Notes: generated by a model from the letters alone, not told the origin. A DNA stretch of 64,000 nucleotides from Oopsacas minuta (GCA_024704765.1 JAKMXF010000308.1:62001-126000), one strand, 5' to 3'. Positions 439 through 30,632 are shown, numbered from the stretch's first letter. Numbers and translations: made by a program.

Positions 439-2034
439 TTGGAATTCGATAGTTGTGAAGAGCTGGATAATATTCAGCAGGATAATTTTCCAGTTGTAAA
501 TTCTGACAAAAACTTATCAGTTCAACAAACCCTCAAATGTGAAATCCAATCAGAACATATAGAAGACATCCCTAATATCAATGATTCAATTAATAATATG
601 GGCAATCAAATAACGACAAGCTTAATAAGTAAACCTGACTTAACTCCAAGATCAGAAGAGCAAGATAGATCCACAATAGAACCTCCTATACCCACAGATC
701 ATGAGCCTCAAACTTCAAAAGCATTCATATCACAAGGCAGTGATATAGTAGATAATATGTGGGATGAATTTTCTTTCACTAAATATATTATTCATACTCC
801 GAAAGCAAGAAAATCTCTGAGGACTACTATTCCTCATCCATTTTCAGTTTACTACAAAAGTTTAAAACCAAAGAAGAAAACTCAAGCTCAAATTCAGGGT
901 GAAATGAAGAGAAGATTGGAAAAAGAATCAGAAGAAAGGGAGTGTTCTAGAAAGTTCGTTTCTAGACCTGTACCCAAGAGCACGTATGAACCCAGATACC
1001 AAGAAATACTAGCAAAAGAAGAGAACAGGCGTCAACAAACGAGAACTATTTCAAAAGATACTCTCCAGGCAATTGTCAAACCTTTCAAATTTGATAAACG
1101 AGAATCTGAGAAATATCTGATACAAGATTCCTATTCTACAAAATCAAGTGTAACCCAAAATCAGCTGATGTTTAAAGCTAAACCTGTTCCTAAACATTTA
1201 TTTCAGACACGATACGAAGACGAAGTAGCTGAACAAGACCTTTATCGTGAAATCAGAAAAGTTATGCGTACAAATCAACTTCTATCAACCTCGAGGCTAC
1301 CCGCTAGCATGTCAGCTTCTGAGAAAACTCTCTCCTACACAGACGGACATAAGAGACGAGTCAGAGAAGAACGGAACTCCAAACAAGCATTCATAACCGC
1401 AGAACATAAATTCAAACCGACTGTTAATAAACGTATGCCAGACTTTAAACGACAACAAGAATTATTCGAACAGAAAATGTTAGAGAGGAGACAGGAACAG
1501 AGATTATCCCGTTTGGAGTTTTCAGAACAAGACCTTATGATATCAGACTTGGATATAGGAGGGAGGAAAAACTTTGAGATAACAATACCCAATGTATGTG
1601 ATGTATTAATGAAAGCATGTCCGGTTAAGAAGAGACAGGTACGTAGAGTAGATGAAGTTTATGGTCACTCGCCCACCAAGAGCACTCAGTTAAGACAAGC
1701 CCTGGTTCAACAACGTATTAGCGTCCAAGCATCTAAAGAAAGAGATGAGAGAGATAGAGCTAGTGAACAGATGGAGAGGGTTAGACGAATGAAGAGACGT
1801 GTAGTGGAGCGTGTTAAGAAGTTTGATAATAGAGGAGAGATTCAGAGGAGAGCTATTGAGAAGAAGAGAGATTTTAAAGAGATGGAGGAATCACGACAGA
1901 GTGACTACACAGAACATTTGAGAATGATTAAAGAGAAGTTAGAAGAACGTCCTCTGGTATTTGAACGGGTAGCTTTACAATCAGCAAATGATGGTATTAG
2001 TTTGGATGAACTTAACAACACTTATACAATTTAA
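439..2034 (+). CDS. FAM161A: FAM161A/B-like centriolar/ciliary microtubule-binding protein (UPF0564); 5' end probably incomplete
   Basis: Motifs KPFKFDKRE, FKAKPVPKHLF and FKPTVNKRMPDFKRQQELF followed by a charged coiled-coil tail. The ORF-track start is TTG and the frame stays open back to about 319, so an upstream exon is likely. Confidence 0.75.
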   Translation: MEFDSCEELDNIQQDNFPVVNSDKNLSVQQTLKCEIQSEHIEDIPNINDSINNMGNQITTSLISKPDLTPRSEEQDRSTIEPPIPTDHEPQTSKAFISQGSDIVDNMWDEFSFTKYIIHTPKARKSLRTTIPHPFSVYYKSLKPKKKTQAQIQGEMKRRLEKESEERECSRKFVSRPVPKSTYEPRYQEILAKEENRRQQTRTISKDTLQAIVKPFKFDKRESEKYLIQDSYSTKSSVTQNQLMFKAKPVPKHLFQTRYEDEVAEQDLYREIRKVMRTNQLLSTSRLPASMSASEKTLSYTDGHKRRVREERNSKQAFITAEHKFKPTVNKRMPDFKRQQELFEQKMLERRQEQRLSRLEFSEQDLMISDLDIGGRKNFEITIPNVCDVLMKACPVKKRQVRRVDEVYGHSPTKSTQLRQALVQQRISVQASKERDERDRASEQMERVRRMKRRVVERVKKFDNRGEIQRRAIEKKRDFKEMEESRQSDYTEHLRMIKEKLEERPLVFERVALQSANDGISLDELNNTYTI

Positions 2035-2196
2035 CCATCTATTAAAAATATAGATTTGAATCATTATATATTTTATCCTATCACTATTACAGCATTCTAT
2101 TATTTGTAATTTGTTAAAATGCTTATTATATGAATGACACAACTCTTAATAGCTAATAATATTAACAATTAATAATATACTAAATTCTCCTTAGAA

Positions 2197-3018
2197 ATGT
2201 GTGGAGCAGAGATTGATTGGAATATTTCTAGAATAGAATCAAACTTTAGAAATTATATTGAGAAAGGAGCGTGGGGACATTGGCCTTCTGTTAAGAAAGA
2301 GATTAAATATGTTGATAGACCTGTTTGGCTGGTATCATTTGATAAAATTTCTTCTATAATTATATTACTTACTGAGATAAATGGAAAAGTATTTGTGATA
2401 ATGACGACTCGATCCGAAAAGGTTTCAACTCACAAAGGACAAGTATGCTTTCCAGGCGGTCAGAAAGAGCCAACTGACTCCAGTCCGATTCAGACCGCTC
2501 TTAGAGAAGCTGAGGAGGAGATCGGACTACCTCAAACCTCTGTTCGGATTTTGGGACTTATAAGCATAATTCCTTCATTTCTCCATCACGTTACGATTGT
2601 AGTCGGAGTAATTACTAATCCTAACTTTGTTCCTGTTCTCTCAAGTACTGAAGTAGATAATTACTTCTATTGTCCTCTAGAATTCTTCATATCTACTGAC
2701 AATCTGCAAACTAACATTATGGATTTGGAAAATTGTGATCTGACTCTTTTCAATTTTCAATACTTTTGCCCTGTAACAGAGAGAACACATAAGATATGGG
2801 GTCTAACTAGTGTCGTGGCTGTATTTGCATCTTGTATTGCATATAACAAACTTCATCCTATATCATTTAACTGGTCTCCCTGTAATGAGGTTGACGCAAA
2901 TTACAAAAGAGCTATCATTTCTTATTTAATTGGATTTGATAAAGATAATAACAGAATTATTTTCTATATCTATTCTGACTACCGGACAGTATGTAAAAAA
3001 ATGGCATCTCGTTTATAA
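2197..3018 (+). CDS. NUDT7: Peroxisomal CoA diphosphatase, Nudix hydrolase NUDT7/NUDT8 family
   Basis: Nudix box GGQKEPTDSSPIQTALREAEEEIGL preceded by the CoA-pyrophosphatase motif TTRSEKVSTHKGQVCFPGG; IWGLT motif; C-terminal SRL is a PTS1 signal. Confidence 0.88.
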   Translation: MCGAEIDWNISRIESNFRNYIEKGAWGHWPSVKKEIKYVDRPVWLVSFDKISSIIILLTEINGKVFVIMTTRSEKVSTHKGQVCFPGGQKEPTDSSPIQTALREAEEEIGLPQTSVRILGLISIIPSFLHHVTIVVGVITNPNFVPVLSSTEVDNYFYCPLEFFISTDNLQTNIMDLENCDLTLFNFQYFCPVTERTHKIWGLTSVVAVFASCIAYNKLHPISFNWSPCNEVDANYKRAIISYLIGFDKDNNRIIFYIYSDYRTVCKKMASRL

Positions 3019-3894
3019 TCTGTTTGCACATAGAATTTGTATTAAATCGAGCTTGCCTCTTTATTATGAATAATATTTTGGTCACGTGAGGGGCCACAAT
3101 AACCCTAACTATATTTATTGATTTGCATGTGTAACTTAGATGTAAATTTATGGCCAATGTTGGGAAACTAGGGGCAGGAATAAGGCCGGGATGGCGATCG
3201 ATTTAGCGTCACAAGGCCAAGTGGTGATGATCAAAGAATACTTTACATTCAATGCAAGGCTGGCGGAACCGGTCAGAGCACTTTTTTCTTTGGTATGCAC
3301 TACTCTATGGTGCTTTCGAAATTTCAGGCTTAATACACTTTAATTAATTAACAATTGGTACTTCCGGTCATTAGGGCCCCGATTAATCAGATCCATTGGC
3401 CAGAAACAAATCCTGTACATTTTGAATCGGGCCAACATCTTAATTCCACAAATCCGGTCAAATTACTTGCCAAGGTTAGTACTCGTAATAGCAAAGCTTC
3501 TTATAAGTATTTTAATTTATAAAATATGTTCGTATGTGTACATCTCATGTATAACCAACATTAAATTGTATGTTAGATAGTATGTAATAGGAAGTACTAT
3601 TGAACTCTGAAAGACCCCCCCACCAACAAATCCAAAAGCTGAATCCTGATGGTATAATAATAATAATAATAATTCTAGTATTACTAAGGCTCATGTAGAT
3701 ATAGCCTTAGTAGTTTTCGTAAAAATAAATCACATTTAACACCAACTTCACCTGATTTTGTATACGCTGTTACGTAAGTTTATTATATGGCTCTATTTGT
3801 ATAGTCCAATAAACTCTTTATTTGATTTGGAATTAATTATTGAATGTTTATCTAAATCGTTTATGCAATATTTATATGAAATGTATAAATACAT

Positions 3895-4386
3895 ATGCTA
3901 TACAGAATTATTTATACATTAGTAACACTTAACATTTACAAACAAACAATGAGCACTTCAGAGAGAAAATTGAGAATAAAAATTATGAGTAAAAAATATG
4001 TTAAAGAGGCAAAGAAAAAATTACAAAATTCACTCCAATTATGTGGTGGATTCCGCGAATTTGATGCACTTTGCAAAGAATTAAAAGAGAGCGGGTATTT
4101 AACAATGCAGGATGAAGCTCATTTGAGAGACAATAGAAGGAAACAAGGAAAAATTATCAACTCACAAAGTTATAGTAAAAATGTGAAATTATATATGATA
4201 GCTCTAGAATCAGCTATCAAGACTCAGGAATCACTTAGAGATGAACTTTTAGAAGAAAAAAATAATTTAATAGCTGAAATTACCAGCTATGAAATCTTAA
4301 TGAATTCTTTCTATTCTGATAATATGTTTACTCCACAATCTTATTATGTGTATAATACCCCATACCCATACAATATAGAAAGATAA
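3895..4386 (+). CDS. Diverged Maf/CNC-type bZIP protein with degenerate basic region (start may be ATG 3949)
   Basis: LTMQDEAHLRDNRRK followed by a heptad zipper LESAIKTQESLRDELLEEKNNLIAEI. Aligns in register with the paralogs at 18659 and 55850. Confidence 0.6.
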   Translation: MLYRIIYTLVTLNIYKQTMSTSERKLRIKIMSKKYVKEAKKKLQNSLQLCGGFREFDALCKELKESGYLTMQDEAHLRDNRRKQGKIINSQSYSKNVKLYMIALESAIKTQESLRDELLEEKNNLIAEITSYEILMNSFYSDNMFTPQSYYVYNTPYPYNIER

Positions 4387-5047
4387 TGTTAGTATTATTA
4401 TTATTACTAACTCATTAGATTTAGATACAAATTATATTATTAAATTGCAGATAGGTCAATATCTTTGATTGTAAGTTTAATTTGGGTTTCTCTAGCTTCA
4501 GCCGAAACTTATATCAGAGGAGGTTAAGGAAAATATTCAAACTATAAAATAGGGAATATTAATTTACTAACTCATATATATGTATGTTACCAGTTATAAA
4601 CTATTTCCACAAGATATATCCCTGGTATTTAGGTAACATTACATAATATTGAGGGTAGGATGCGAGCGATGTGAGCCGAATTTTACAGTTTGCAATTTAA
4701 GCCAAGGGGCTGGGAGCATGCCTCGAGGCACGAAGTTTTCCAGGGGGAGCATTGGCCCTAGTCACGCGATGTCCCTGGCAAATATGCTGTGTCCCGCGAA
4801 GTCCAGCTAAATTAGTACCCTCTGTTCCACTTTTTACTTCACTCAGGTTGGCAAGGATGAACATGCACCGCTACAGGCCAATTAAAATGAAGAAATAGTA
4901 TATTATTGTATATTGCACAAGTGCGGACCACTTTCTTGAACAATAAAAGCTTTGTATTGAAAAGAAATAATTTTTACCCATTATTACTAATTATATATCA
5001 ACAACAAGAAAGAAATATATTTACACAGACTATAATTAATTTACTAA

Positions 5048-5245
5048 TCAATTTTGCTTTTCAAAGGAAAAGATAGTTTCACGTCGGATCTTTGACTGCA
5101 TTCGCATGAAGTTTGTTCTCCTTTTATGAAGAAGCTCAAGCACATAATCAACTGGGCTTATTCCGAAAATGTACATTAATGTAAAATAGACGATGAGAAT
5201 GATCAACAGAACTGCTATGATCCATAAAAGAGCGATATATGACAT
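5048..5245 (-). CDS. Small putative single-pass membrane protein, 65 aa
   Basis: ATG start, a hydrophobic stretch of about 25 residues (IALLWIIAVLLIILIVYFTLMYIFG) and a basic tail. No family recognised. Confidence 0.3.
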   Translation of the reverse strand: MSYIALLWIIAVLLIILIVYFTLMYIFGISPVDYVLELLHKRRTNFMRMQSKIRRETIFSFEKQN

Positions 5246-5459
5246 TGCTTTATTTGTAGGAAGGAATTGGTTGTTGTAGTTTACTATATGATATTTATTG
5301 AATCATTAACAGTGCATTGATACAAATAGAATATTAGATAAATACATATTAAGGTCGTTTTAGCTAATTCGCCCCAGTTCAATAAATTATTCATTATTAG
5401 ATGTTAACGAGAAGTTATTAATAATTAGGCGTTCCTAAATATTGGTCATTAACATAATA

Positions 5460-7795
5460 AAAAATTCTTTCCTGCTGCTCTTGATGATACTATATATATA
5501 TCACCATATCCATATCACCCACAACACATCCTTAGAATTGTATTTCAGCTAAAATACTTTCACATTACTCCAAGTGCTACATGCATATAATACGATAGGT
5601 ACTCAACCATAGTAGGTGAGCATCAAGTTTCAAATAATCTTATCGTATATCTGAGGCTATATGTGTAAACAGTGCAGTACGCTACCTATATTTCAAGAAA
5701 TTATCGACTTAGGTTCGATATATGACTTTGCGAATGTAATCAATGTTTGTAGTGAATTCAGTAATGCTCTACAAATCCATCAATCAATGCCAGAGGATCG
5801 TCCTATTACAATTGAACTACATGGTTCTTCACTTGTCACTATAGTTAGTTACATCATTTGAGTACGAAATGAGGTAAATACACAGTGAATCTAAGTCTAA
5901 GTGAATCTACACTCAAAGAAATGCAGTCAAATTTTGTTTGCGAGAATTCTACGGGGGTTACAAATCCCAATGCTACCAAGTCATTCGTTGTTATGAATGG
6001 TCTTCTCTACGAAATAGTATAGGGAAGCGTGGGAATAGTTATAGATATCAGGACTTCTCCTCCCTCTCAGATACTGATTAGAGCATATCACTGATTTACA
6101 ATTTTCCCTCATTTCAGCTGAGGCACGACTTGGATATCTATTTTCGAAGGATACTCTTTCATCTGTTGAAGACCAGAGTCTATTCTAATGCGAAATCTGA
6201 TGGAAACATTGCAGCACTAAAAGCTAGAGCACTGTACCTTGCAAAGTTGGCTAATGTAAATCAAGGTCCTGGATTGCATATACCTTACTTCAAGTATGAT
6301 GCTTACAGAGATACGATAAATTCTGTTAAGAACCTGCTCACTACAATCACAGCAAATATTCGTTGATGGTAAATACTATAGTGAACTTAATTATGGAAGT
6401 CGGCCATTCTTTGACCGTGGATTCAATGGTAAGCCATTGGAATTTCAAACATCTCCACGTATGCAAACTACACTAAATAATTTGGAAAACAGAGCCGAGA
6501 TACTATATCCCTATTTCGAATGTCCATTGCATAGAAGTGGTGCGATGTGTTGTAGAAAAGAAAAGAGGATGCCCATAAATCGTGGTAGGAGGCACCCAGG
6601 GGGTGAAATTGTAATTGGAACCGGCCAAACTGAAGATACCGAGGCTACGCAGCTCGTCTCTTATAGCTCTCACTACTTCGATTAGTCTGAGGAACATGAT
6701 ACAGAATTGCATCCATTGGAATCTATTGTTATTGATTCTATTTCATTCAAAGAGGGTCCATTCGAAGGAATGATTTCAGATATTACCCCATTCTCAACCT
6801 GAAAGATCAGGCTCCCTCCTGTCAAAGACAAAGAAGAATTACAATACAACATTTCCTTAACAATTATACTCAAATTCTAAATATATGCTCAGCTGTTGGC
6901 AAGAACCATAACTTCAGCCTAGACCATGCTCCAGCTGAAAGAATTCTACGTGCTATCAGCCTCAGATATGATGAAAGCAGAGCTGCAAATGGGTCACTGA
7001 CCCATGGGTCAGTGGGTCATGGGTCATTCGTTAATGGGTCATGACCCATCAAAATTCTATTTATATACAATGTAGGCTTAAAAGAGTTATTTGCCAATTA
7101 GAAAACCTTCTAAATAGAGTTAATAGAGGTGGTCATTATACTAAATGTTTGGAATACTACAAGTGAGAGTTTTAGTCTCCTTGATTGGCGGAAGCAGAAT
7201 AAACTTAGGTTTCCATTATTATCAATAATTGTCATGAGACTATTGGTAACTCAGGCATCCTCATCCGAAAGCGAGAGACACTTTAGTGCCTTTAATGCTC
7301 GGCATATCGTAACATCTCAACGGAATGCAATGTTGCCAGAAACTATCGAAGCTGTCTCTGTTGTGTTGGAAGGATATAAAATCAACTTAATTTAATTATT
7401 GTGTTAGACTAAATACTTACATTATACTTGCTCCTAATAATGAAATACATAATGGGTCAGAAAATAATAGATGGGTCATGACCCATGGGTCAATGGGTCT
7501 TGGGTCACTACTTCGATGGGTCACATGGGTCATGGGTCACTTCATGTGACCCATTTGCAGCTCTGGATGGAAGTCCTGCTACATTTATGTTTGATCGCAA
7601 TCTGACTATTTTATTTCCAATGTTACGCCAAGTGATGTAATTATTCCCGATGTACTAAAGATGATGTCTGATAAGTCAGTGTGTGGTGGAACTGATATTG
7701 TATTTTCCTTGGATGAAGCACAAATCAACAAAACTATGTACAAATCTTTAATTAATATATTAATTAACGCTTAAAAGTTAGAACTAACCTTCTCG
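5460..7795 (+). pseudogene. Long decayed coding-like region of unknown family, interrupted by a hAT element
   Basis: Successive same-strand protein-like frames (5661, 6130, 6437 and others) broken by single stops and frameshifts. The frame reads through the hAT empty site (ISLRYDES|PATFMFDRN). Confidence 0.3.
6978..7565 (+). mobile_element. Non-autonomous hAT DNA transposon (deletion derivative keeping the C-terminal dimerisation domain)
   Basis: Terminal inverted repeats (TIRs) CAGAGCTGCAAATGGGTCAC / GTGACCCATTTGCAGCTCTG. 8-bp TSD GATGAAAG/GATGGAAG. Subterminal TGGGTCA/TGACCCA repeats. ORF 7129-7395 has LDW..N..RFPLL...L.TQASSSESERHFS..RN, the hAT dimerisation motif. Confidence 0.92.
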
Positions 7796-8606: not shown

Positions 8607-9022
8607 TATAGATTTGAAAATGTCAAATTGGAATCTACATCCTCGATAACCCCTGATTAGCATTCGAAATGGAATCTCAGGCATCAATTTGAAATATGTG
8701 TAAGAAGGTGTGAAAATATAATTAATGATATGATAAATCTGTAAAGAATCTCAAAATCTGTCTCTACGCACCCAATTACCCCCATGTTGAAACCTAATCT
8801 CTAGCTTGCTTTTGTAGTAAACATAGTAAGGTGTGAAATATTCACTTTAGAAAAATTCATACCCGAGGTGCAAATCTCCGACCCAAATTGTATATATATA
8901 CACACACCAATTTTCATGTTCATTCGACTGCTAGATTTCGCACGGCCGCGCGGACTGACGGAAGTACTGAAGTCGCACATCGTCCATTGCCATTAGGGCA
9001 TCTCCCTATAGGAGCTGCAATA
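8607..9022 (+). repeat. Dispersed repeat family R1, copy 1 (unclassified non-autonomous element)
   Basis: Similar blocks at 11790-12214, 31602-31750 (reverse), 36320-36440, 43305-43435 and 46990-47110 (reverse). Shared motifs: GTGTGAAAATATGATTAATCATATGA, CTCTACGCACCCAATTA and the end GCATCTCCCTATAGGAGCTGCA. Confidence 0.75.
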
Positions 9023-10148
9023 ACAACATTCAAATCAAAATTATTCCAAAATTATATTGTTAATTAATATACTATTAGCGGGCTACGCGGTTGCGAACAC
9101 TTCGTGTCCACACTCGGACCTACGGCCCTCGAGTACATAAACTCATAATCTTAACCGTAGCAAACATGATACTTCCATAATCTTTAAATCTTCTTACTTT
9201 ATGCCCCAAAAGTGAACAAATATTTATGAGATGTTGTTTACAATCATATTTGGACTCAGCATATTCGATAACCCCAGTATTCGAGTATCCAGTATTCAGA
9301 CTGTAATTATTTCAACGTCATCACAACAGGGTTGCCAATCCAATCAATCGAATCAACAATCCAAATCTCTTATCGATTTTTGGGTTGTACTTTGGATATT
9401 TGTTTTTGTGGTTAGACTGTTTGTAATTGCATTTTTGAAAATCTTTGGACTGTTTTAGGATTTATTCATTGTTTATTTAGTTGTTTACAACTTTACATTC
9501 AACTTTTGTTAGTGTATAATATTTCCAAATTCCTACATTAAGGTATAGTTGACAACCCTTTCCAATCTAAATGAAAATACAATTAATCAATTGATTCATA
9601 ATTTGGAATCATATTAATATACATATTGAGAGGATCAAAGCAATCCAATCAAAAGAAAATGTAGCAATCGACAATTGAAAAATTGTTCGTGTTCGAATTT
9701 CATGTTCATGTTTAATGTTTTGTGTTCGTGTCGTGTTCGTGTTTTACTTTCCGCCTTTTGTGTCGTGTTGGTGTGAAATTTGAACACGACGGTCCGTCAC
9801 GCTGGGCTCTAATTTCCAGCATGCTTTTCAATAAAATAGTACACACTTTGCTGTATGAAAAAGTGAACTTTTTACACCTATCTGGTAATTAATCATAATT
9901 TTCACATCACCTCTTAGGAGCTACACAAATAAACTATAGACAAAATGAATCCGAAATAGCTTTCGTCTGTCGGACTCTACCCTAATATAGCAGCATAGTT
10001 ACAACTAGGAGTATCATATGACAAAGAAGACTGAGACAAAGAAATAATTAGTTTTAGCTATATGCCATATAAATTAGGCTGAGGAATATACATATATGTT
10101 TATCACATTTGAGAATACTGAGAAGTGATTAGGCAGCGTAGAATCAAG

Positions 10149-11276
10149 ATGGCAGATTCTTCTGGTTATACTACCACTAAAATCCCTATCAATTTTATCT
10201 TAGACGTGTTCAAGGAATCTGGTTCAGTCAATGACAAGGTAAAACAGGTAAAAGAATCAAGAAATAATGCGAGCTGGGTGTTGATAGGGACTACTGGATC
10301 AACATGTGAGGATGACCCGTGTCAAGTATTGACAATGGAAGTCATTAAATTCGGTGATGTTATAGGGGACTTAATGAAACTACTACCACAGGATAAGATT
10401 CTATATTGTTATATTAAATTAGAATGTATAAATGAACAAGGTACTTATCGTAGTCTTCTCATTCATTGGATTGGAGAAAATGTATCAAGGGACTATGTTA
10501 ATGCATGTGAGTTTCATATTGACGAAATTAAAGAAGTGATAGGAATATCTGATGATGTAGTAGTTTCCCGTAATCATCAGGAATTAATGAGTAAATTCAA
10601 GAAGCTTTCGAGATTGGAGATTCCAAATAGGGAAAAACTACAGAAGAGTTCAATGGCACCATATGAAGTTAATTTCAAACTTTGTATTATTGGAGACAGT
10701 GATGTTGGGAAAAGTTCAATTTTGAAATCCTTCAAATGTGAAGGAAGAGGGTTAAAAGAACATGAATTACCTTCAGCAACTGTAGGTTACAATTTTCACA
10801 ACTACAAATTTAATGTTCCCAATACCAATACAACATGTAAAGTTAATATCTGTGATACAGGAGGACAAGAAAAATTTAGATCAATGACAATACAGCACTT
10901 TAGAAACAGTCATGTTGTTCTCATGGTCTATGATATAGCTGATGCTAAATCATTCGAAGCAATTCCTTACTGGTTTGATTTCGTAAAAGAATATGTAGCT
11001 GACAAAGCTATATTCATGTTGGTTGGTAATAAGTCAGATCTCTTTGAAAAACGTGAGGTTAAACAAATCATAGCACAGAATTATGCAAAGGAAAATGGAT
11101 GTGAGTACTTTGAATGTTCTACAACTCAGGGGTCTAATATATTCCATCTCTTCAACCAAATCGAAAAGAATCTACCAATCGTATATCCAGAAATGCTAAT
11201 TCCGCAACAAGATGACACATCAAACATAGATCCAGGACAAGAGGATAGATCCAGGAAAAAATGTTGTAAAGTATGA
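10149..11276 (+). CDS. ADF-H (drebrin/Abp1/coactosin-like) domain fused to a Rab-family GTPase
   Basis: The N-terminal half has SWVLIG, LPQDKILYCYIKL and RSLLIHWIGENVSRDYVNACEFH (ADF-H). The C-terminal half has GDSDVGKS, ATVGYNF, DTGGQEKFRSMT, MVYDI, GNKSD and a CCKV prenylation end. It is one uninterrupted ORF from ATG 10149. Confidence 0.88.
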   Translation: MADSSGYTTTKIPINFILDVFKESGSVNDKVKQVKESRNNASWVLIGTTGSTCEDDPCQVLTMEVIKFGDVIGDLMKLLPQDKILYCYIKLECINEQGTYRSLLIHWIGENVSRDYVNACEFHIDEIKEVIGISDDVVVSRNHQELMSKFKKLSRLEIPNREKLQKSSMAPYEVNFKLCIIGDSDVGKSSILKSFKCEGRGLKEHELPSATVGYNFHNYKFNVPNTNTTCKVNICDTGGQEKFRSMTIQHFRNSHVVLMVYDIADAKSFEAIPYWFDFVKEYVADKAIFMLVGNKSDLFEKREVKQIIAQNYAKENGCEYFECSTTQGSNIFHLFNQIEKNLPIVYPEMLIPQQDDTSNIDPGQEDRSRKKCCKV

Positions 11277-11361
11277 TAAAAAGATTGTAGTTACACGATA
11301 AACAGTATTCAGAAACTTAATTATTTACGTTATGTAATCTATTCCTCATTGATATTCATGG

Positions 11362-11513
11362 CAAGGGCGTGCTGGCCATATAATCGATTCGGGATAGCTG
11401 GTTGGGTCCCTTGGGGACAGTTTGGGCACTCGAGAACAGTGTAACCGACCAGTGCACAATGGCCCCTTCTGAATGTAATCCCGCATGGGTTCCTCAACAC
11501 CAGCACGTCCATG
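11362..11513. mobile_element. Short MITE-like insertion
   Basis: Imperfect TIR CAAGGGCGTGCTGG / CCAGCACGTCCATG. Possible eroded 8-bp TSD ATTCATGG/AGTCAAGG. Confidence 0.35.
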
Positions 11514-11789
11514 AGTCAAGGTAGATAAATTTTAACAATACAAGTTTGATTATTATTATTTGCACCTTGGGTATGAATTTTTCTAGTGTAAACAGTGACC
11601 GAAGAAGCGTTCAACATTGCCTAGTAAATAATACAACTTTTAGCTATATGATGAACTCTACCCAATAGTTATCACTGATTACCTGGGAATCTATTGAATG
11701 ATAAAATATTGGTAGTACAGTATTATCATTCGAAGTATAAGCCCAAGATGTTATAATATGAATAATCATATGATTAAGTATGTAGATAT

Positions 11790-12214
11790 AACAAGATTAG
11801 GAAATGTAAAATCTAAATCTCTATACTGGATTACCACTAACTGCAGTTGAAACGAAATATAGCATCATTTTGAAATATATGCAAAAAGATGTGAAAATAT
11901 GATTAATCATATGATAATTCTGTGCATTTTTGTAACATCCAGACTCTACACACCCAATTACCCCTGAAAACCTGTTGAAACCTAATAACTACCATGGTTT
12001 GGAATTTACATAGAAAGATGTGAAGATATGATTAACCACCCAAAAGTTCTGAAAATTCACTTAATAAAATTGATACCTGAGGTGCAAATCTCCGACACAA
12101 ATGTATATGTGTACAAATTTATGTAAATCGGGACTGCCATATTCGCACGGCCCCGCGGACGGACGTCGTACAGCGTCCATGTCATTAGGACATCTCCCTA
12201 TAGTAGCTGCAATA
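11790..12214 (+). repeat. Dispersed repeat family R1, copy 2
   Basis: Collinear with 8607-9022, including GAGGTGCAAATCTCCGAC and CATCTCCCTATAGTAGCTGCAATAA. Confidence 0.75.
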
Positions 12215-13029
12215 AAATTGTTTGCAACATCTTGTGCACGCATTAGTTTTGGAAATTAAATAAATTACTAATTTTAATTACTAAAAAGCAAGAGTCCATT
12301 AACTTAAAAGATCGTTGTTATCACATTTATCAATCTTCTCTTGATAGTAGTACTAATTAGTTTTAGCTGCTTCAAGTAAATCATCATACCTTTTACATTC
12401 CATTCTAAGCAAAGTATAATGAACCATTACGTGGGTCTTTCTATACTTCCTTCCGATCGGCGTTTCTGCCTCTTAATTTCTCTAAACTCTTTTTGTTCAA
12501 GGCATTACAAGGGTATGGGAAGTCGGCTATTTACTACAAATTGGCTATCCTGATCAAACAATAACTTACAAGATTATCGAGTTATAGTAATTGAATAATC
12601 ATAACAAAAGTGTCATCCATTGTCCCTACTGTAACTCAAGAACGACTAACTATATTAAAAATTTTTGATATTTGTATAAAAGTATTTATACGGAGACCAG
12701 TTGATATATTTACTTTGAATCAAATATGCAATATTTAACGCCATACAAGGCATCAAAGAATGACATCTTTTACCAAAGAAGTGCTTACTAGACACATATT
12801 TGACACTTTCTTGATATATTCTGATCTGAAATATAGAAAAAACAATCGAAACCGGATTTTTCTAACTAATATTTCTTTGCAGAAATATGTAATGAGAAAA
12901 AACCAAAATAGTATGAATAAATTGATATGTAAATCACCCATACTTAACAATCTCAGCAAAAATATATTTAGATATAGTTAAATAAAATATAATCATGTTC
13001 TGCTAAATACAAATAATATGGAAATATAA

Positions 13030-16729: not shown

Positions 16730-17278
16730 TCACTTCTTAGTAACGGGTAACCCTTTAGAGATTGCAATATTCGTAACCAGAGAGACGAATGGCTCTCTTA
16801 AAGTTTCTCTACTTGTGAGAGTAACTTCAAAAGCACTCAACTTTTGCATCTCAGCCCAATGTATAGTGCTTAACTTATCAACTTGTCTACTATCTTCATA
16901 ATCACTGTGTGTGCCGAGGATAATTATTGGAATATCCTTGTGACGCTCTGAGATTTTCTTCCTTAGTTGGATAACAGTGTCAAATGTCGGTTTCTCTGTG
17001 ATATTATAAGTCAATACTATCCCTTCTGCTATGGAAATGTAATGCTCTAGGAGTTGATCATCATAAAGAGATTTTCCTGAAGTATCAAACAAACAAACTC
17101 TATACCAAACTCCTTTTCCAATATTTATATCTGCTTTGTAAATATCTTCAATGGTGTAAGGAACGTCTTTAGATTGGATGATATGATTCCCAAATATTAG
17201 ATGCTGAATAACTCCTGTCTTCCCTGTTCCTAAATCTCCTAATACTATGATTTTGAAAGGTTTGTGAATACTAGCCAT
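16730..17278 (-). CDS. NKIRAS: NF-kappaB inhibitor-interacting Ras-like protein (kappaB-Ras)
   Basis: Family-specific segments QHLIFGNH, TIEDIYKADINIGKGV, RQVD, WAEMQK and FEVTLTSRETLREPF parallel human kappaB-Ras (LLYGNH, TMEDVY, WEVTVTDRKTLIEPF). No CAAX, as expected for this family. Confidence 0.82.
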   Translation of the reverse strand: MASIHKPFKIIVLGDLGTGKTGVIQHLIFGNHIIQSKDVPYTIEDIYKADINIGKGVWYRVCLFDTSGKSLYDDQLLEHYISIAEGIVLTYNITEKPTFDTVIQLRKKISERHKDIPIIILGTHSDYEDSRQVDKLSTIHWAEMQKLSAFEVTLTSRETLREPFVSLVTNIAISKGLPVTKK

Positions 17279-18658
17279 AATCTAATTTGGGAAATTTATG
17301 ATATTTTAATGAAATTTACTAGTCTAGCCTAATGAATATAGATATTTCTTGCTCAGGAGTTTAGCGTACGTCTGAATAACGTGATTAGGATTGATTTAAT
17401 TAATGCCAGTTTGATTTTGAGAAGTGATATTTAGAGTAAAATATTCTTACAATTTTTCATAATTCGAAACAATTTTAGAGAAGCGATTGTTGTACGAATG
17501 CTCATAACAGGTTAAGCAGAAACTAAAATGTCATACTAATGTTAATGATAAAGTTGATGGCTCCTAACTTATTGTCATGTTCATGCTGAATCATGCGCAC
17601 ACTTTCATATTTTATATAGCTCATGCTATATTTATGCTAGCAACAAAACTTATATTTTTCTCTCATGCAAAAACTCAAATGTTGATCATGAAAATGGATA
17701 ATTAGTTATATTAAAGTACACGTAGTTAATGTCATAACATTTCTCGATTGCTCATGCGAAAGACTTCGAACTTTATATAACGCTACCAAGGTAGTTATTA
17801 TATATTAGAAAATATCCACAATTCGGACGGAACGATCCCAAAGAATAAAAGTAGTTCTTCTTCAGTGTACTATGCATAAAGCACACTCACTTGATAATCA
17901 AAAAAATTAGTAACTTTCGAGGAAAAGTGACGAATTTGGCTGAAAACAGTGAGATATTTATAAGATGATAATAAAAATGATTTATGCATTATAATTCATT
18001 AAACCTACTTAGATAGAATTGGATAAATTGAAAATTCCTTTTAATAATCGCACCTAAAAGTCTACCGTAATTCAAGGTCACCTCTCCAGCTCCCCTGTTA
18101 TTGATTGTGTAAATATTATGGGGGAGTGTTTTCGTATTCTGAAGGAGTATCCTGGACTTTGAGAGTTGGAATAGATCACATGTACTAACTTAAACTCCTC
18201 TCTTAGTTCGCAAATTCGTTGAACTAAGACGGTGTGAGGTAGCACTAATGAAATTATGTAGTTTAGTTTTAGCTATCGCCAGGTCAAAAATGTTGTCAAA
18301 AACCAGCTAACTTTCATTCGAATAATCATTCTACCCACAAGCATTTGTTTCCATTATCCATTACCTCAAAATCAATAGTAAAGGGAAAAACTGTCATTAA
18401 GACCACGAGTGACTTTGCAGAAATTTGGCTCGAATGCAATTAAATGATAAGACAACAGCCAATATATATGGCAGATATATTTCATTATTTAGCTAAATTT
18501 ATTCAGAAAGTATGTAATACTTTCTATCTGTGTGAGAAATTTGATCTGGCTATAAAATATAAACAGTCTAGTATATTTCAAGAAAAATATAAATAGACTC
18601 GCTGAGAGTGAATTTAGTAGAAATAATTCGAAGAATCTCCAATATTCAAAATCAAAGA

Positions 18659-19099
18659 ATGGCAATAATACACATTTCAGATGAATATTGTAGAAATCTT
18701 TTGGAAGAATCTCGTTTGAGGATAACTTCTATTGCAACTCCACAGAAATATCGAGCATGTAAGCTAATCATGAAATCGAATGAGCCAACCAAATTCGACA
18801 AACCCTTTCTTGATCAAATCGACTTGATAAAATTAGTCAAAATAACAAAATTAGAATTGAGCAAGCTCATAAACAGTAGAGTGCTGACTGAAGAAGAAAT
18901 AGATTTTATTAAAGAAGCAAGGAGGAAAATGATCAACAGAATGTCAGCAGGAAGATCAAGAGAGAGACAAAAGTCTGAATATTCAAGTTTAGAATTAAAA
19001 CTGCAAAGTTTAAATGATACAAAAATGTCACTTCTGAAAGAAAAGAGGTCTCTTCTCAATGAGATTGAAATATTCAAGTATAACAGCAAGATACTATGA
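18659..19099 (+). CDS. Maf/CNC-type bZIP transcription factor-like protein
   Basis: Extended-homology-like segment LVKITKLELSKLINSRVLTEEEIDFIKEARRK, basic region INRMSAGRSR and a leucine zipper. First ATG is at 18659; the track start 18608 is GTG. Confidence 0.75.
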   Translation: MAIIHISDEYCRNLLEESRLRITSIATPQKYRACKLIMKSNEPTKFDKPFLDQIDLIKLVKITKLELSKLINSRVLTEEEIDFIKEARRKMINRMSAGRSRERQKSEYSSLELKLQSLNDTKMSLLKEKRSLLNEIEIFKYNSKIL

Positions 19100-19654: not shown

Positions 19655-20245
19655 CTATGAAAGAGAACAACATACTTTAATAGGTTGAGTTGTATTGGGA
19701 ATATTAAGGTTAACTGATTGAGTTAATGTATCACAACCTCTTTTATGAAATGTTTCAACTAAAAATTGTAGAATGTCTTCACAACCTACACCACTCTTAG
19801 CTGAGACTTGAAATGATTGCTTTGAATTTGTCGTCCTAATCGCGCGATCCAACAAATCTCCCTTAAATCGTTCTCCAATTAAATCTAGCTTATTTCCTAC
19901 CAGAATCGAAACGTAAGTCTCTACAAAATTATCAAGTTTTTTTTTCCAACTCTGCAGAGTTTCAAGAGAATCCAGATCGCTTAGATCATAAACAAATATG
20001 ACACATTCTGCAGAACGAAATAAACTTGTAGGGATGTAAGATCCGATTGATTCAAATCCCTTAGTATCCTGAAACACAAAACAAACTTTCTTGGAATTAC
20101 ATTGAATATCCTTACGACCTATATCAATAGTTAAACTCGAAGAAGGGTCGGACAAAAAATCATCCTTTATAAATCGATGTAAAAGAGAAGTTTTCCCCAC
20201 TCCCACATCTCCAAGAAGTGTCACTTTAATTTCAGGAATACTCAT
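19655..20245 (-). CDS. Divergent Rab-like small GTPase
   Basis: G1 GDVGVGKT, G3 DTKGFE, FVYDL, G4 NKLD, G5 SAK, C-terminal CCSLS. Confidence 0.85.
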   Translation of the reverse strand: MSIPEIKVTLLGDVGVGKTSLLHRFIKDDFLSDPSSSLTIDIGRKDIQCNSKKVCFVFQDTKGFESIGSYIPTSLFRSAECVIFVYDLSDLDSLETLQSWKKKLDNFVETYVSILVGNKLDLIGERFKGDLLDRAIRTTNSKQSFQVSAKSGVGCEDILQFLVETFHKRGCDTLTQSVNLNIPNTTQPIKVCCSLS

Positions 20246-25080: not shown

Positions 25081-28000
25081 TCAAGATAGACTAGTCCGAA
25101 TTGAATCTAGTTTGGAGAGCGTTTCACTAAGAGAGCTAACATCTGAATCAGGAATTCTGTAACGAAGAGCATTAACATTCTTCTCAATAGAAGAGAATTG
25201 GTTGAGAAGATTATTTTGAATTCTCTCAATATCTTCAAATAATCGCATCTTACAACCCCAATCAGAATCGTTAATAGCAATCATGAGAGAAGTTAAATTA
25301 GGATCAATATTCTCTCCTTTAATACTATTGTCCTCTTTTCCTAATAATTCTGTTTTATCAGTTGTTTGTGTAGGATTTGTATCTTTAATGGCAATTTCAT
25401 CATTATCGTCTTGTGTTCTCTCCTCATGGTTATCAGTAGAACTAATACACTTAGCAGTAGTATCAGATTGTGAATTAGAATCTTGATTAGAAGTTATATA
25501 AGAAAGAGAAGCAACCTTCTCCTCAATCTGAGTAGGAGAAAGAAGATTACAATTAGCACTCATGAATTCCTTCAGGTAAGGATGGTTACTTGTTCTTGCT
25601 ATTTGTATTTTGAGGTTAACTGAAGGTAACATGTTCTCAAGAGAAGCAAGTTGATTTTTGAGAGAACTGAGTTGAGCTCCCGTCTCTACAATATCTGTAT
25701 CAGTTGGAAACATAAGCTTACCACTATGGTACCATGGATTAGAATGCTTATATTGTTCCCTTTTGATACAAGCTGGTGGATCAGAGCATTCAGAACAGAT
25801 GTGTTGATCAGGAAGATCCCTTTCACTTAACCCCATACAAGAAGTATGTTGCCATGTCATACATTGTTCACACTGTACCATTACACCTTCATCTTTATCC
25901 TGATCGCAAACACATCTTATCATCTCCCCGGTGTTAACAGAAATGACAGAAGCTCCGATAGAATCATCATCGTCTATATCACTCCCACTGGAGTAATACT
26001 TTTCTTTATCAATTCTATCTTCAGAATTTAATTCAGCTGTATTATCTGCCGCATTTACTTGTTTAATCTCAGAAGTCTCATTGATAACTCTGGTCTCCAT
26101 CATGTCAATAATATCCATATTAGATTCTGTCACAAGATCTGTCTGCATTTCTTCTACTACCTCTGTTAGTATGGTAGGATATGTTTCCTTATCATCAGCT
26201 GAGATAGATATGACGTCTGAGATAGATATGACGTCAGAATGAGGAATATTAGTGTCCTCCTGATCTCTATTCTTGTTTCCAACCTCTAACGGAGTCTGTT
26301 CAGATTTGTCACTATTTCCTTCAGTACCCGACGGAATTACAATTTGCTGTTTAGGAGGTTTCATTCTGAGAGTAGCCTTCTCTTTGAGCTCCTGTTGTAA
26401 CTTAGGATTACTCATCTGAGTACGGACATCCTTTTTCAAGTTATCATGTTTGTCTTGCCTGTCTTTAAGCTTTGTATTCTTACGAACTGTTTTATAGTTA
26501 GTAACAAAATCCCAATTCTTCTTGATACTGATGCGTTTGGATTGTCTGGAAGGGACTGTAGCTTGAAGGGGCTGTTTAGTCGGAGGAGGTGGTGTCTGAG
26601 TGGGTGCAGAGGGCTGAGATTCTTCTATAGGGTCAGAAGGGATTAAAATTGTTACGGTAGGAGTGGTGGGTTCTAGGAAAGAAGACTTTCTGGGTTGAGA
26701 AGATTTCCTCTTAGAGCGATGAGAAGATGCAGGATTTTTGAATAAAAGCTCTGTGTGAGTGATTGAGTGATCACTGCTGGTAGGAAACTCAGGCTGTTCA
26801 GTAATTATATCAGGTTCTGGAGTAGTTAGAGGAGAACAGACAGGAGTCAGTGGTAATACATTTAGACAGGGTTTTTCTACAGGTTTAGATTTCTTGTGTA
26901 TAGTAGATGAACCATGAAATACTCGCATATGTTTCTTAAGACTTTCTCTCCGATGGAATTCTTTCTTACAACCAGCTCTCTGACAGACAAATAATTCACT
27001 TTCTAAAGTTGTTACCAATTCACGAGGCGCGACCTTCCTGTTGTGGTCTGGTAGACGTAACTTTCTGAGTTCTCGATTTTCCATTTCCTCTTCACTGAGA
27101 GAATTCTTCCTCACTTGTGAAGTGGATGCTTCAGTGATGCCACTTCTCTGTGGATCAGCTGGTTGTGTATCTATAAATAGAGCTTTGTCACTCTCTGAGT
27201 CAGATATGACGTCATTAACCTGCTCCATTGGCTGTGGAGTGATGTCACGACTAGTTTGCACAGGCTGTGTATTAGCAGACTGGTAGAGCTGTGGAGCTGG
27301 GTTATGTAATAGAGAGAGTTGTGTCATCTGATCAAGGTAGCAGGTAGAAGCAGTTTCTTGAGTATGTACATTGATCGTTGAATAAGCAGTGTCTTGAGAT
27401 AGCTGTATATTGGAGGGATGAGATATTGATGGGAGCTGCTGCAGATTAGTAGAGAGAGCCATAGAATGAGGAGCATGTAAGCTAGAAGAGGGATATTGCT
27501 GTATAACCGGGGCGTACGGTGTCTGATAAGGATACGAATAAGGCTGCTGTACTGTGAGATAGGATTGCTCAACTGGAATAGTAGTCGGGTTATTGGGAGG
27601 ATTAACCTGTATAGGAACCAGCTGGTAGTAGAGAGGCTGGGTAGTTACGTCACTAGGAGGTGCAGAAGGTGCAGGAGGTTGAGGAGGAGGAGGAGGAGGA
27701 TGCGGTTGGTAGGAAGGTGTGAGGGTTAGGACTCTACCGTCAGCTGTTACTACGGTCTCTGTGTATGGAATAGGAGGTGTGTAGTTGGAGAGGAGAGTGG
27801 GAGAAGATTGATCTAGAGGGGGCAGCTGGACTTGAGTCGGGAGCTGTGAGTCAGGTACCTCTGGATTGACAGAGATAGGAGCAGGAGAAGGGGTGTGTCT
27901 ATCTATATCTGTATGAGTCTGTATTTCAGCATTAGATTCTTGTGCAATCTCTGTCTGTATAGATGATATAGGAGCTGATGACAGTATGGGAGGATCTCTC

Positions 28001-28908
28001 CTCTTTCTCAGAGATATATCCTTCATCCCGCTTAGAGGGGTAGAGGGAGCTGTTGAGATGACGTCACTATCAGGCTCTGCTAGATACTCTAGATCTGGTC
28101 CCAGTACAGAAGAGAAAGATTTGACAGAGTATGTCTTTCCCGAGAAGAGAGTGAGATTGGGAGTATCTTCATTTCTCTGACTAGAATTCAGATACAAACC
28201 TGAGAGAGGAATATTCACAGATAAACTCATCTCCTCCTCCAGCTCAATTAGGTCTGTTACCATTACATTACTGCTAAATGTGTCCAATGGCATTATAGTA
28301 GTAGTAGTAGTAGTAGTAGTAGTATCGTTATTGAGCTTAGAACGTCTATGTAACCGCAACTCGCGGCTTTTGGCACGCTCAATATTCTCTTGTTGTTTGA
28401 GTAGTCTAGCTGACTCTGTGAATTCATCTATCTTGTCAGCATTTCGTATTCTACCAACTTCTACTGTATGTAATACTCCGTCTTCAAATCTTACTTCATA
28501 CTTGTCTCCAGGTCTAGTTCTAACCACATGACACATATAGAACTTATTATCTATCCATTTAGCTAGGACATTATCTCCAGGTTTGAAAGCTGTTACTTTC
28601 TTACGAGTGGGATCAGAGTGTGGAGGGAGAGGTCTAACCTTTTTACTCGTGTACTTGTACCACTCATCAAATCTGGTGTTCCATCCGTCAAAATGTACTA
28701 AGAATGTTTGATCACTTTCATCGACGAATACTATCTTACCGAAATACCATTTTCCATCGAAAGAGGCTGCTTCCAATGAGTACCCAATTCTAACATCTGA
28801 TAGGTCTATACCAGCACCCTCTATAAAGTTGTCAGGTGTGTTAGGGGAGCCTATCTTTGGTCCTGTAACTTCTGTCTCATTTATCTCGGGTTTATCTATC
28901 TGCTCCAT
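25081..28908 (-). CDS. PHF20: PHD finger protein 20 (PHF20/PHF20L1)-like chromatin reader
   Basis: Two Tudor domains (FLVHFDGWNTRFDEW; VLAKWIDNKFY...YEVRFEDG), a C2H2 finger (CQRAGCKKEFHRRESLKKHMRVFH) and a PHD finger (IRCVCDQDKDEGVMVQCEQCMTWQHTSCMG...CSEC). First ATG is at 28908. Confidence 0.9.
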   Translation of the reverse strand: MEQIDKPEINETEVTGPKIGSPNTPDNFIEGAGIDLSDVRIGYSLEAASFDGKWYFGKIVFVDESDQTFLVHFDGWNTRFDEWYKYTSKKVRPLPPHSDPTRKKVTAFKPGDNVLAKWIDNKFYMCHVVRTRPGDKYEVRFEDGVLHTVEVGRIRNADKIDEFTESARLLKQQENIERAKSRELRLHRRSKLNNDTTTTTTTTTIMPLDTFSSNVMVTDLIELEEEMSLSVNIPLSGLYLNSSQRNEDTPNLTLFSGKTYSVKSFSSVLGPDLEYLAEPDSDVISTAPSTPLSGMKDISLRKRRDPPILSSAPISSIQTEIAQESNAEIQTHTDIDRHTPSPAPISVNPEVPDSQLPTQVQLPPLDQSSPTLLSNYTPPIPYTETVVTADGRVLTLTPSYQPHPPPPPPQPPAPSAPPSDVTTQPLYYQLVPIQVNPPNNPTTIPVEQSYLTVQQPYSYPYQTPYAPVIQQYPSSSLHAPHSMALSTNLQQLPSISHPSNIQLSQDTAYSTINVHTQETASTCYLDQMTQLSLLHNPAPQLYQSANTQPVQTSRDITPQPMEQVNDVISDSESDKALFIDTQPADPQRSGITEASTSQVRKNSLSEEEMENRELRKLRLPDHNRKVAPRELVTTLESELFVCQRAGCKKEFHRRESLKKHMRVFHGSSTIHKKSKPVEKPCLNVLPLTPVCSPLTTPEPDIITEQPEFPTSSDHSITHTELLFKNPASSHRSKRKSSQPRKSSFLEPTTPTVTILIPSDPIEESQPSAPTQTPPPPTKQPLQATVPSRQSKRISIKKNWDFVTNYKTVRKNTKLKDRQDKHDNLKKDVRTQMSNPKLQQELKEKATLRMKPPKQQIVIPSGTEGNSDKSEQTPLEVGNKNRDQEDTNIPHSDVISISDVISISADDKETYPTILTEVVEEMQTDLVTESNMDIIDMMETRVINETSEIKQVNAADNTAELNSEDRIDKEKYYSSGSDIDDDDSIGASVISVNTGEMIRCVCDQDKDEGVMVQCEQCMTWQHTSCMGLSERDLPDQHICSECSDPPACIKREQYKHSNPWYHSGKLMFPTDTDIVETGAQLSSLKNQLASLENMLPSVNLKIQIARTSNHPYLKEFMSANCNLLSPTQIEEKVASLSYITSNQDSNSQSDTTAKCISSTDNHEERTQDDNDEIAIKDTNPTQTTDKTELLGKEDNSIKGENIDPNLTSLMIAINDSDWGCKMRLFEDIERIQNNLLNQFSSIEKNVNALRYRIPDSDVSSLSETLSKLDSIRTSLS

Positions 28909-29439
28909 TTGTGGTATCAATCATCAGTTATCTAAATATATCTTGTTAGTTTGTAAATTATAGCAGGGAATTTTTAGCCATTTTTCATGGATAGCCGGAC
29001 AAAATCCATATTATTAGATAGACCTCCAAAATTTTATCAGAGGTTGGACGGATATAAACTCTCCAAAATGCAATAATCGGGGTTGGGCATTCAATTACAA
29101 AACGGGTTGAGATACCCCTTCATAGCAGGTATAGGTATTCCTTAATAAAAATTATTCATAAATTGGAAATAAATAAAATAAATTCAGGTGTGGATAATAA
29201 AATAGGAATGATATAAATATTCGTAGACAGTTATTCTGGGATTGACACACTACTATAATTCTATCTTTATTGTCTAATGTTAATCCTGTTGGTTGATCAG
29301 TAACTGTAATCTTGTGAATAGCATTCAAACTGAACAAGTAATAACCTCAGATAAGGGGAGACTTTCGACAAAATTTATTCCGAGAAAATCGCGTTCAAAT
29401 ATACTGAAATAAAAGTGTCTAAATTATATGAAAAGTGAA

Positions 29440-29830: not shown

Positions 29831-30632
29831 ATTTAATCTAAACATAAAAATAAATAATAAAACTGTATTTCCTGAACCAATGGTATTTCAAATCATACAC
29901 AAACGGACTGATTGTTTATCGAAGAAAAATTCATAGAATCTTTGTAACACAGATTAAATAAGTGTATAAGTATAGTAAAGAAAATGGGGGGTAGAGTATG
30001 AGGAGAAAAAAGAATTGAGTCTTAGTGAAAGACAGGTGGCAAGTGATCAAAAGATTCAATATCAAGGTTTCAAAGTTATAAAGCGTTGAAATTTTAGGGA
30101 ACAAGGAAAAGAAATCGTTCCAAACATACATTGTATCTAGTGGAAAATCAAAAATTATGGGTGTTTTAAAAGATCCAGAAAAACTTTTTCAAGTCATTTT
30201 TTGGCTAAGTCATCCCGAAAACGTCACAAAAAGCTCTTTGAGGCTTACTAAGCAAATTTTTTGACAAATTATGAAAAATTATGCTTTTTAAACAATTTTT
30301 TTTCATATTTTTGGTACAAATACGGCCAAATTGGTCCCCGGTATAGAATACAGTATATTCTGCCATGCTCTGACATTCTTATATTTAACTTTGAAAATCC
30401 ACAACATATATTAATTTAGCAACAGAGTCTCAAACCCTTAACTTAGGAAATCGATCAACGAACAAAGAAATTCACCATGTAGCATGTGATTGTTCGCCCC
30501 ATTAATTATAGAAATTTGATATCTCTCTGTATAGGTCTTTGTGTTGAGTATTTTATAGCTAGAGCTCATCACTATAGTCATATAAATAAGTTATATTGTT
30601 TAAATTGTCACTCTAGTTACAGAACTGAACTA

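Follow-up and report, generated by a model that had tools for sequence, protein, structure and literature searches.

The window analysed here is a stretch of 64,000 nucleotides from the glass sponge Oopsacas minuta (Hexactinellida; GCA_024704765.1, JAKMXF010000308.1:62001-126000). An earlier note on this DNA, made by a model from the sequence alone, pointed to a gene in which an ADF-H domain is joined to a Rab GTPase in one open reading frame (ORF), and it guessed at a host with syncytial tissue, which fits a glass sponge. The gene (10149..11276, plus strand) is a complete intronless coding sequence that encodes an ADF-H-Rab fusion of 375 amino acids followed by a TGA stop codon. The protein features four parts, all on the plus strand: an ADF-H domain of the drebrin/Abp1/coactosin class (residues ~15-155; 10191..10613), assigned by Pfam, a family profile and AlphaFold2 modelling with Foldseek; a linker (residues ~156-171; 10614..10661), predicted to be disordered, with low model confidence and raised substitution ratios; a Rab-type GTPase domain (residues ~172-350; 10662..11198), assigned by Pfam Ras, sequence matches in the PDB and Foldseek; and a hypervariable C-terminal tail (11199..11273), which by sequence ends in CCKV, a CCXX-type end.

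Gene and domains of the fusion protein

The ORF runs for 375 codons without interruption, and no stop codon separates the ADF-H part from the Rab part. The surroundings of the gene have a G+C content of ~34%, and because a stop codon is expected about every 15-20 codons in such DNA by our own estimate, a chance origin is ruled out. An in-frame GTG lies at 10125, 24 bases 5' of the ATG. The three nearest homologues (P0002, P0003 and P0004) begin with MAD or MAN, which matches the ATG at 10149, and the bases at -3 and +4 of this ATG are A and G, respectively. A 2768-base short-read contig from one sequencing run spans 9149-11916 with zero differences, and the gene is also covered by overlapping contigs from the remaining three runs of the same sample. 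The fusion ORF is not a misassembly, because these independent contigs match it without differences. The uninterrupted frame described by the earlier note is thus borne out by the sequence and the contigs, and all of the motifs that it quoted were located: LIHWIGENVS at residues 104-113, ACEFH at 119-123, GDSDVGKS at 182-189, TVG at 211-213, DTGGQE at 236-241, NKSD at 294-297 and STT at 324-326, as well as KFRSMT, HFRNS, MVYDI and the CCKV end. Single-exon genes are abundant in glass-sponge genomes (PMC10282587), so the intronless structure is normal here and is no mark of a retrogene.

The N-terminal part of the protein is an ADF-H domain of the drebrin/Abp1/coactosin class. Pfam Cofilin_ADF (cut-off 22.4 bits) is matched over residues 29-139 with 24.2 bits when the whole protein is scanned and 25.1 bits when only its N-terminal half is, and the relatives score 27.8-45.6 bits. 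A profile built from 13 N-terminal domains of the family, used as the query in a PDB search, matched drebrin best (5y1z, expectation value (E) 1.1e-11), followed by HIP-55 (7.9e-9), yeast Abp1 (1.4e-5), Entamoeba coactosin (7.6e-5) and human coactosin-like protein (~2e-3; 1.6e-3). The domain features an invariant LIHW-G strand, an invariant His123, and Arg101, which in the profile alignment to human coactosin-like protein faces the Lys of the stretch rsKfaLItWiGe; this position is K or R in most family members. We take this Lys to be Lys75 of coactosin (numbering by our own count), the residue that is reportedly critical for F-actin binding. The Arg that the earlier note had placed at the coactosin Lys position is aligned there.

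AlphaFold2 models gave a mean predicted local distance difference test score (pLDDT) of 88.9 for the full-length protein and 86.2 for residues 1-160 alone. The low-confidence parts are the first ~14 residues, residues ~51-60 in the domain-only model, the linker at residues ~155-170 and the C-terminal tail. The domain-only model has the strand and helix order of ADF-H domains, and a Foldseek search of the PDB with this model returned ADF-H domains in all of the first 49 places, with E down to 1.7e-8. The leading structures are coactosin-like protein (1t2l and 1vfq), drebrin and HIP-55, with template modelling (TM) scores of 0.75-0.78 by target, and the nearest AlphaFold DB cluster and ESM Atlas matches are drebrin-like/Abp1 proteins. 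The ADF-H domain that the earlier note had set at residues ~10-150 is therefore found by Pfam above the cut-off, by the profile match to drebrin and by fold, and the modelling that it had proposed yielded a confident model whose N-terminus compares structurally with ADF-H only among the top 49 matches.

The linker has a pLDDT of 57-68, with values below 50 at residues 160-165. Measured between fixed alignment anchors it is 26 residues long in the window copy, which is the family minimum, and 37-95 residues long in the relatives. The full-length model has a predicted TM score (pTM) of 0.66 despite the high pLDDT of both domains, so the relative placement of the two domains is undefined in the model, and contact and independence are both compatible with it.

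The C-terminal half is a Rab and lies nearer to this family than to the Ras, Rho, Ran or Arf families. Pfam Ras is matched over residues 177-341 with 133.5 bits. In a sequence search of the PDB the best 60 of 859 matches are all Rab/Ypt proteins, and the leaders Rab26, Ypt1, Rab30, Rab1 and Rab43 are nearly equal at 90-95 bits (identity to Rab26 is ~37%, counted by hand on the alignment). Foldseek with the C-terminal half gave Rab4, Rab1, Rab6 and Rab5 at TM scores of 0.86-0.92 by target, and the 50 matches listed are all Rab/Ypt. No orthology to a named Rab subfamily was found, with nearly equal PDB scores and a clade of its own in a tree that holds few named reference Rabs. The nucleotide-binding motifs are G1 GDSDVGKS, the switch-I Thr211, G3 DTGGQE with the catalytic Gln240, G4 NKSD and G5 ECSTT; in G3 a Gly replaces Ala and in G5 TT replaces AK. 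The complete Rab read by the earlier note, with its catalytic Gln, CCKV end and altered G3 and G5, agrees with Pfam, the PDB matches and the fold.

The RabF1-F5 consensus is reportedly IGVDF, KLQIW, RFrsiT, YYRGA and LVYDIT, as attributed to Pereira-Leal and Seabra in 2000. RabF3 (KFRSMT) and RabF5 (MVYDIA) fit this consensus, and RabF1 (VGYNF) and RabF4 (HFRNS) fit it partly. Of the three motifs that the earlier note had called RabF-like, KFRSMT and MVYDI thus stand and HFRNS stands in part; a Cys in place of the RabF2 Trp, which is taken up below, had been overlooked.

Across the family the P-loop and NKxD are intact in all members, the switch-I Thr is present in all but the protein of another glass sponge, Vazella pourtalesii, and the G5 ECS is kept in every member where the region is present, so nucleotide binding is likely. 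The catalytic Gln is present in the window copy and is replaced by Ala in P0003, by Ser in P0004 and by His in D3 and P0246; since several paralogues have replaced it, hydrolysis is apparently not required uniformly across the family. The CCKV end fits the classical CCXX motif by sequence, and the C-terminal Cys column is invariant in a 7-member alignment. Double-cysteine ends of the CCXX type are the kind that is modified by Rab geranylgeranyl transferase. The tails of relatives feature CCST, CCED, CxxCxx or an internal CC.

The glass-sponge family and its evolution

The pairing of ADF-H and Rab is a conserved, multi-copy, lineage-restricted and tandemly amplified glass-sponge family, and not the singleton as which the earlier note had treated the gene. 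Full-length relatives with both Pfam domains include P0002, P0003 and P0004, which are ~50% identical to the window protein over 95-99% of the length, and P0008, P0009 and P0010, which are ~28% identical. At least 20 collinear intronless copies of the fusion are found in four further assemblies, often in tandem arrays. Single copies occur at the loci L001, L003 and L004, while L002 carries four fusion genes head-to-tail followed by three Rab-only genes (one at 10805-11455), and in L005 six or more fusion genes are accompanied by ADF-H genes and Rab genes that stand alone, one broken copy and a Tc1/mariner transposase.

The ADF-H profile was also searched exhaustively against 1.84 billion representative proteins. 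This search gave 465 matches, the best 150 of which were checked for a Rab domain with our own hidden Markov model. Nine of these best 150 also bear a Rab domain and all nine belong to this lineage; Pfam, run on five of the nine, found Ras in 5/5 and Cofilin_ADF in 3/5. One of the nine clusters holds a Trinity transcript of V. pourtalesii (EukProt EP00800; P0390), which is collinear with the window protein over both domains (residues 12-331 against 1-336, E 1e-25). This transcript, which stems from a relative and not from the window copy, is the sole transcript-level support for a single message that encodes the fusion. The search for orthologues that the earlier note had proposed therefore found the same architecture in relatives, the Vazella transcript among them.

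Several observations were made beside these searches. The next-best ADF-H matches outside the fusion family are proteins with 2-7 tandem ADF-H repeats, followed by Abp1/drebrin-like proteins. The tandem proteins (P0247-P0256 and others) include one of 1504 residues with seven matched stretches from Willaertia magna and proteins of ~500 residues with three, and we know of no characterised example of an architecture with three to seven ADF-H domains in tandem. P0005 from Rotaria sordida (636 residues) has four tandem Ras-family domains, or is possibly a merged model of a tandem array. It was the first match with a species name, and a rotifer origin of the window was for that reason considered; it was rejected because the carnitine acetyltransferase described below points to Hexactinellida. 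Positions 1-8203 of L005 form a near-perfect inverted duplication, which pairs sugar-transporter genes at 3269-4357 (minus) and 4887-5975 (plus) as well as ADF-H-only genes at 2409-2852 (minus) and 6392-6835 (plus). On one arm the fusion copy at 1038-2297 (minus) is broken into three ORFs, and the Tc1/mariner-type transposase lies within the array at 8724-9788.

The ratio of nonsynonymous to synonymous substitution rates (dN/dS) was calculated by the Nei-Gojobori method on codon alignments. Between the window copy and P0002, P0003 and P0004 it is 0.15-0.40 for the ADF-H domain, 0.15-0.19 for the Rab domain and 0.5-0.8 for the linker, with synonymous sites near saturation. The cross-assembly pair C4 and D4 has values of 0.15, 0.14 and 0.35 for the ADF-H domain, the Rab domain and the linker, respectively, and cross-assembly and older paralogue pairs overall range over 0.11-0.41, 0.13-0.35 and 0.35-1.0. 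Because the ratio is low in both domains, they are kept by purifying selection while joined, and the linker, which evolves in a near-neutral manner, behaves as a spacer or flexible leash.

A maximum-likelihood tree unites the Rab domains of the fusions with those of the neighbouring Rab-only genes in a single clade (support 82/78), in which the window gene groups with P0002, P0003, P0004, P0006 and P0007 at 100/99. The Rab-only genes are nested among the fusions, and this nesting suggests that the ADF-H part was lost or truncated more than once. The branches of the Vazella protein and of P0257 are long and unresolved. A separate observation concerns P0002 (L001 6001-7254) and P0003 (L004 10001-11248), which lie on the same contig ~80 kb apart; their synonymous divergence is 1.17 in the ADF-H part and 0.16 in the Rab part, a pattern that resembles gene conversion, or the swapping of a domain, within the Rab part only.

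The window copy is flanked by two direct copies of an interspersed repeat of ~400 bp, at 8610-9025 and 11790-12217, which are ~80-85% alike with indels and ~3.2 kb apart. At these repeats the short-read contigs break and the word depth reaches thousands, compared with ~70-150 in unique DNA, so the element is very high-copy. A reading of the pair as an LTR-like (long terminal repeat) element, or of the gene as transposon cargo, was considered and is less likely, given copies that are only ~80-85% alike, contain many indels and belong to an element of very high copy number across the genome; it is more likely that an interspersed repeat inserted twice independently. A related inverted arm of 35 nucleotides lies at 11558-11592. 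The window shares no neighbours with L001, L003 or L004 within flanks of 6-10 kb and no repeats with L002 or L005, and scans of the window with Rfam and for tRNA genes gave no matches.

The rest of the window holds long intronless ORFs of ordinary animal proteins, including FAM161, a NUDIX enzyme, a PHD/Tudor protein, NHL-repeat proteins, a MatE transporter and a carnitine acetyltransferase. Among named species the last of these enzymes is nearest to that of O. minuta, at 46% identity, compared with 64-70% for contigs of ENA assemblies and only 33-42% for other animals, which places the genome in Hexactinellida. Two intronless small-GTPase ORFs at 16730-17278 (minus) and 19655-20245 (minus), 5-9 kb downstream of the fusion gene, match Pfam Ras with 77 and 93 bits; they are 22-30% identical to the Rab half of the fusion and have very long tree branches, and so are not close paralogues. 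NHL-repeat beta-propeller ORFs form a loose cluster at 30486-31478 (plus), 37331-38212 (minus), 48518-49792 (minus) and 45963-46574 (plus), apparently a locally amplified family. Among three short ORFs at 18608-19099 (plus), 55353-55850 (minus) and 3895-4386 (plus), two are of bZIP/Maf type and the third has no Pfam match. Positions 26001-28000, within the 1279-codon PHD/Tudor ORF at 25081-28920 (minus), have a G+C fraction of 0.43 and a GC skew of +0.27, compared with ~0.33 and ~0 around them.

Proposed mechanism and alternative explanations

We are highly confident that the fusion is a real gene family under selection. For its mechanism we propose a tether between membrane and F-actin, a proposal drawn from sequence and models to which we give about an even chance. 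The CCKV tail would be geranylgeranylated, which would place the Rab half on a membrane, and the Rab half would cycle between GTP and GDP. The ADF-H half, on its short leash, would bind the side of actin filaments. The fusion protein would thus be its own effector and would couple a Rab-marked membrane directly to F-actin with no separate effector recruited; the outcome may be that a compartment is tethered, held in position or shaped with the help of actin. The loss of the catalytic Gln in some paralogues suggests that several members may be permanently 'on' anchors rather than switches. Taken as a whole, with family and tether combined in one blended judgement, this explanation is the best one and probably correct, with odds that are somewhat in its favour.

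Several points weigh against it. The Cofilin_ADF score of the window copy alone is marginal, at ~2-3 bits over the cut-off. The isolated ADF-H domain of drebrin binds actin weakly and that of GMF binds Arp2/3, so the ADF-H fold is no guarantee of F-actin binding. RabF1, RabF2 and RabF4 have diverged in the window copy, where RabF2 reads KVNIC and Cys235 stands where nearly all relatives, and Rabs generally, have Trp; among near relatives the substitution is peculiar to this copy. In Rabs the RabF2 Trp belongs to a hydrophobic triad through which effectors are bound. Cys235 may be less important if the ADF-H domain serves as the 'effector', or it may mark a weakened copy. P0002, P0003 and P0004 bear 12-14 residues past the Cys pair, and classical C-terminal prenylation is for this reason probably not universal in the family. 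Constraint is weaker in the very recent tandem pairs C2/C3 and D2/D3, where some dN/dS values are near or above 1 (1.31 for the Rab part of C2/C3), so some copies may be drifting. No RNA-Seq run was listed in the run searches, and the four runs that contain the gene, all from one sample, have a flat depth over the gene and intergenic DNA and look like genomic DNA.

It is possible, though on balance unlikely, that the fusion is functional and its ADF-H domain binds not F-actin but Arp2/3 as in GMF, or a non-cytoskeletal protein as in the pairing of drebrin and ZMYND8, or that it folds back on the Rab as a built-in regulator. A GMF structure (1vkk) takes rank 7 in the list of structural matches, and the best sequence match, 5y1z, is the drebrin ADF-H domain crystallised with ZMYND8. 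However, the profile ranks the F-actin binders drebrin, HIP-55, Abp1 and coactosin first, no GMF chain is listed among its PDB matches at E up to 1, and most members retain the basic residue that faces the coactosin Lys, reportedly a requirement for F-actin binding. The pTM is compatible with contact between the two domains as well as with their independence, and the Cys in place of the triad Trp in the window copy would alter any effector or intramolecular interface, but a near-neutral linker of 26-95 residues is more in keeping with a leash than with a fixed contact inside the protein.

An explanation that we regard as distinctly improbable is that the window copy is a paralogue that has gone silent or is in decay, with an ORF that looks intact but is unexpressed or non-working, and that it sits between two high-copy repeat copies. 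The lack of an RNA-Seq run in the searches, the unique Trp-to-Cys change, the shortest linker of the family and the repeats with depth in the thousands on both sides would all suit such a copy, and broken copies such as the one at L005 1038-2297 (minus) with its three ORFs exist elsewhere in the family. On the other hand, the frame stays open for 375 codons at 34% G+C, the dN/dS values against the three nearest relatives are low in both domains, the start context is good, and the nucleotide-binding motifs, catalytic Gln and CCXX tail are all intact. That the fusion is an artefact of the gene model, in which adjacent coactosin-like and Rab genes seem fused through an assembly error or a missed intron or stop, is effectively refuted. 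Stand-alone ADF-H genes (L005 6392-6835; P0243 and P0244) and stand-alone Rab genes (P0006, P0007 and L002 10805-11455) do occur beside fusions. However, there is no stop between the domains and one contig spans the gene with zero differences, five assemblies contain at least 20 copies of the same continuous ORF, and the Vazella transcript encodes both domains in one ORF.

Relation to known systems and significance

Rabs with N-terminal extensions are known, and what is new, as far as we have seen, is a Rab with an N-terminal ADF-H extension of the actin-binding class. The large Rabs Rab44, Rab45/RASEF and Rab46/CRACR2A feature N-terminal EF-hands and a coiled coil (PMC8303950), as the earlier note had also stated, and CRACR2a and Rab45 act directly as dynein adaptors (PMC6504887). 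The fusion resembles them in having an N-terminal functional module and a C-terminal Rab with putatively prenylatable cysteines in one polypeptide, and Rabs with built-in cytoskeletal coupling thus have a precedent. Unlike these proteins, whose EF-hands and coiled coil act on microtubule motors, the fusion has one actin-class ADF-H domain, and Pfam, read up to an E of 1, matches neither EF-hand nor coiled-coil families in it. It is also much shorter at 375 residues, is restricted, as far as we have seen, to glass sponges, and has a Rab domain without orthology to theirs.

The ADF-H half is closest by profile and fold to drebrin, HIP-55 (mAbp1) and yeast Abp1, with which it shares the L-I-x-W-x-G strand, the preceding Lys or Arg and a C-x-S-H helix motif. 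These proteins are soluble adaptors that continue into helical or proline-rich regions and, in Abp1 and HIP-55, an SH3 domain, whereas the fusion, in which Pfam finds no SH3 domain, continues into a Rab with a lipid-anchor motif. Coactosin likewise has a single ADF-H domain, is the best structural match, and has a W-I-G-E-N-V-S stretch that is identical in the window copy; however, this side-of-F-actin binder is a stand-alone protein of ~140 residues, and its profile similarity (E ~2e-3) is weaker than that of drebrin.

Rabs mark the identity of membranes in eukaryotes, and to our knowledge they have been described as reaching actin only through separately recruited effectors. In the Rab27-melanophilin-myosin Va, Rab8-EHBP1 and Rab-MICAL systems the actin-binding part is a separate protein that is recruited in a GTP-dependent manner, and the structural neighbours of the Rab half found by Foldseek include Rab8 with the actin-binding EHBP1 (6zsi). 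The presumed result, a Rab-marked membrane linked to actin filaments, is the same in the fusion, but here the domain of the actin-binding class is covalent, so that its recruitment need not depend on the nucleotide state. Searches of open-access papers and bioRxiv found no description of an ADF-H-Rab protein, in keeping with the earlier note, which knew of none, and no such protein is found among the AlphaFold DB or ESM Atlas neighbours.

The earlier note had read the protein as a membrane-anchored switch wired to actin that would serve organelle or cytoplasmic streaming. The architecture it described is supported by sequence, profile, fold and conservation, but the streaming role is doubtful, because organelle streaming in hexactinellid syncytia, on work attributed to Leys, is said to be microtubule-based. 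Actin is thought to pattern silica deposition (Ehrlich et al. 2022, in the form in which that work is cited in the Aphrocallistes genome paper, PMC10282587), and this offers a speculative alternative context for the family.

The function described here is one that we infer throughout, and the family is confined to a little-studied lineage. If the proposed tether is true, a Rab with a covalent actin-binding domain would be a minimal, genetically compact linker from membrane to actin, and it would be a natural experiment on whether effector recruitment must be GTP-dependent. Our tentative suggestion is that glass sponges evolved and amplified 'self-effector' Rabs, prenylated GTPases with a leashed F-actin-binding domain, whose paralogues, some without the catalytic Gln, may mark different compartments of the syncytium, a candidate being the membrane around growing silica spicules. 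If so, the arrays would give cell biologists a concrete candidate gene set in animals that have syncytial tissue, organelles specific to their lineage and silica patterned by actin.

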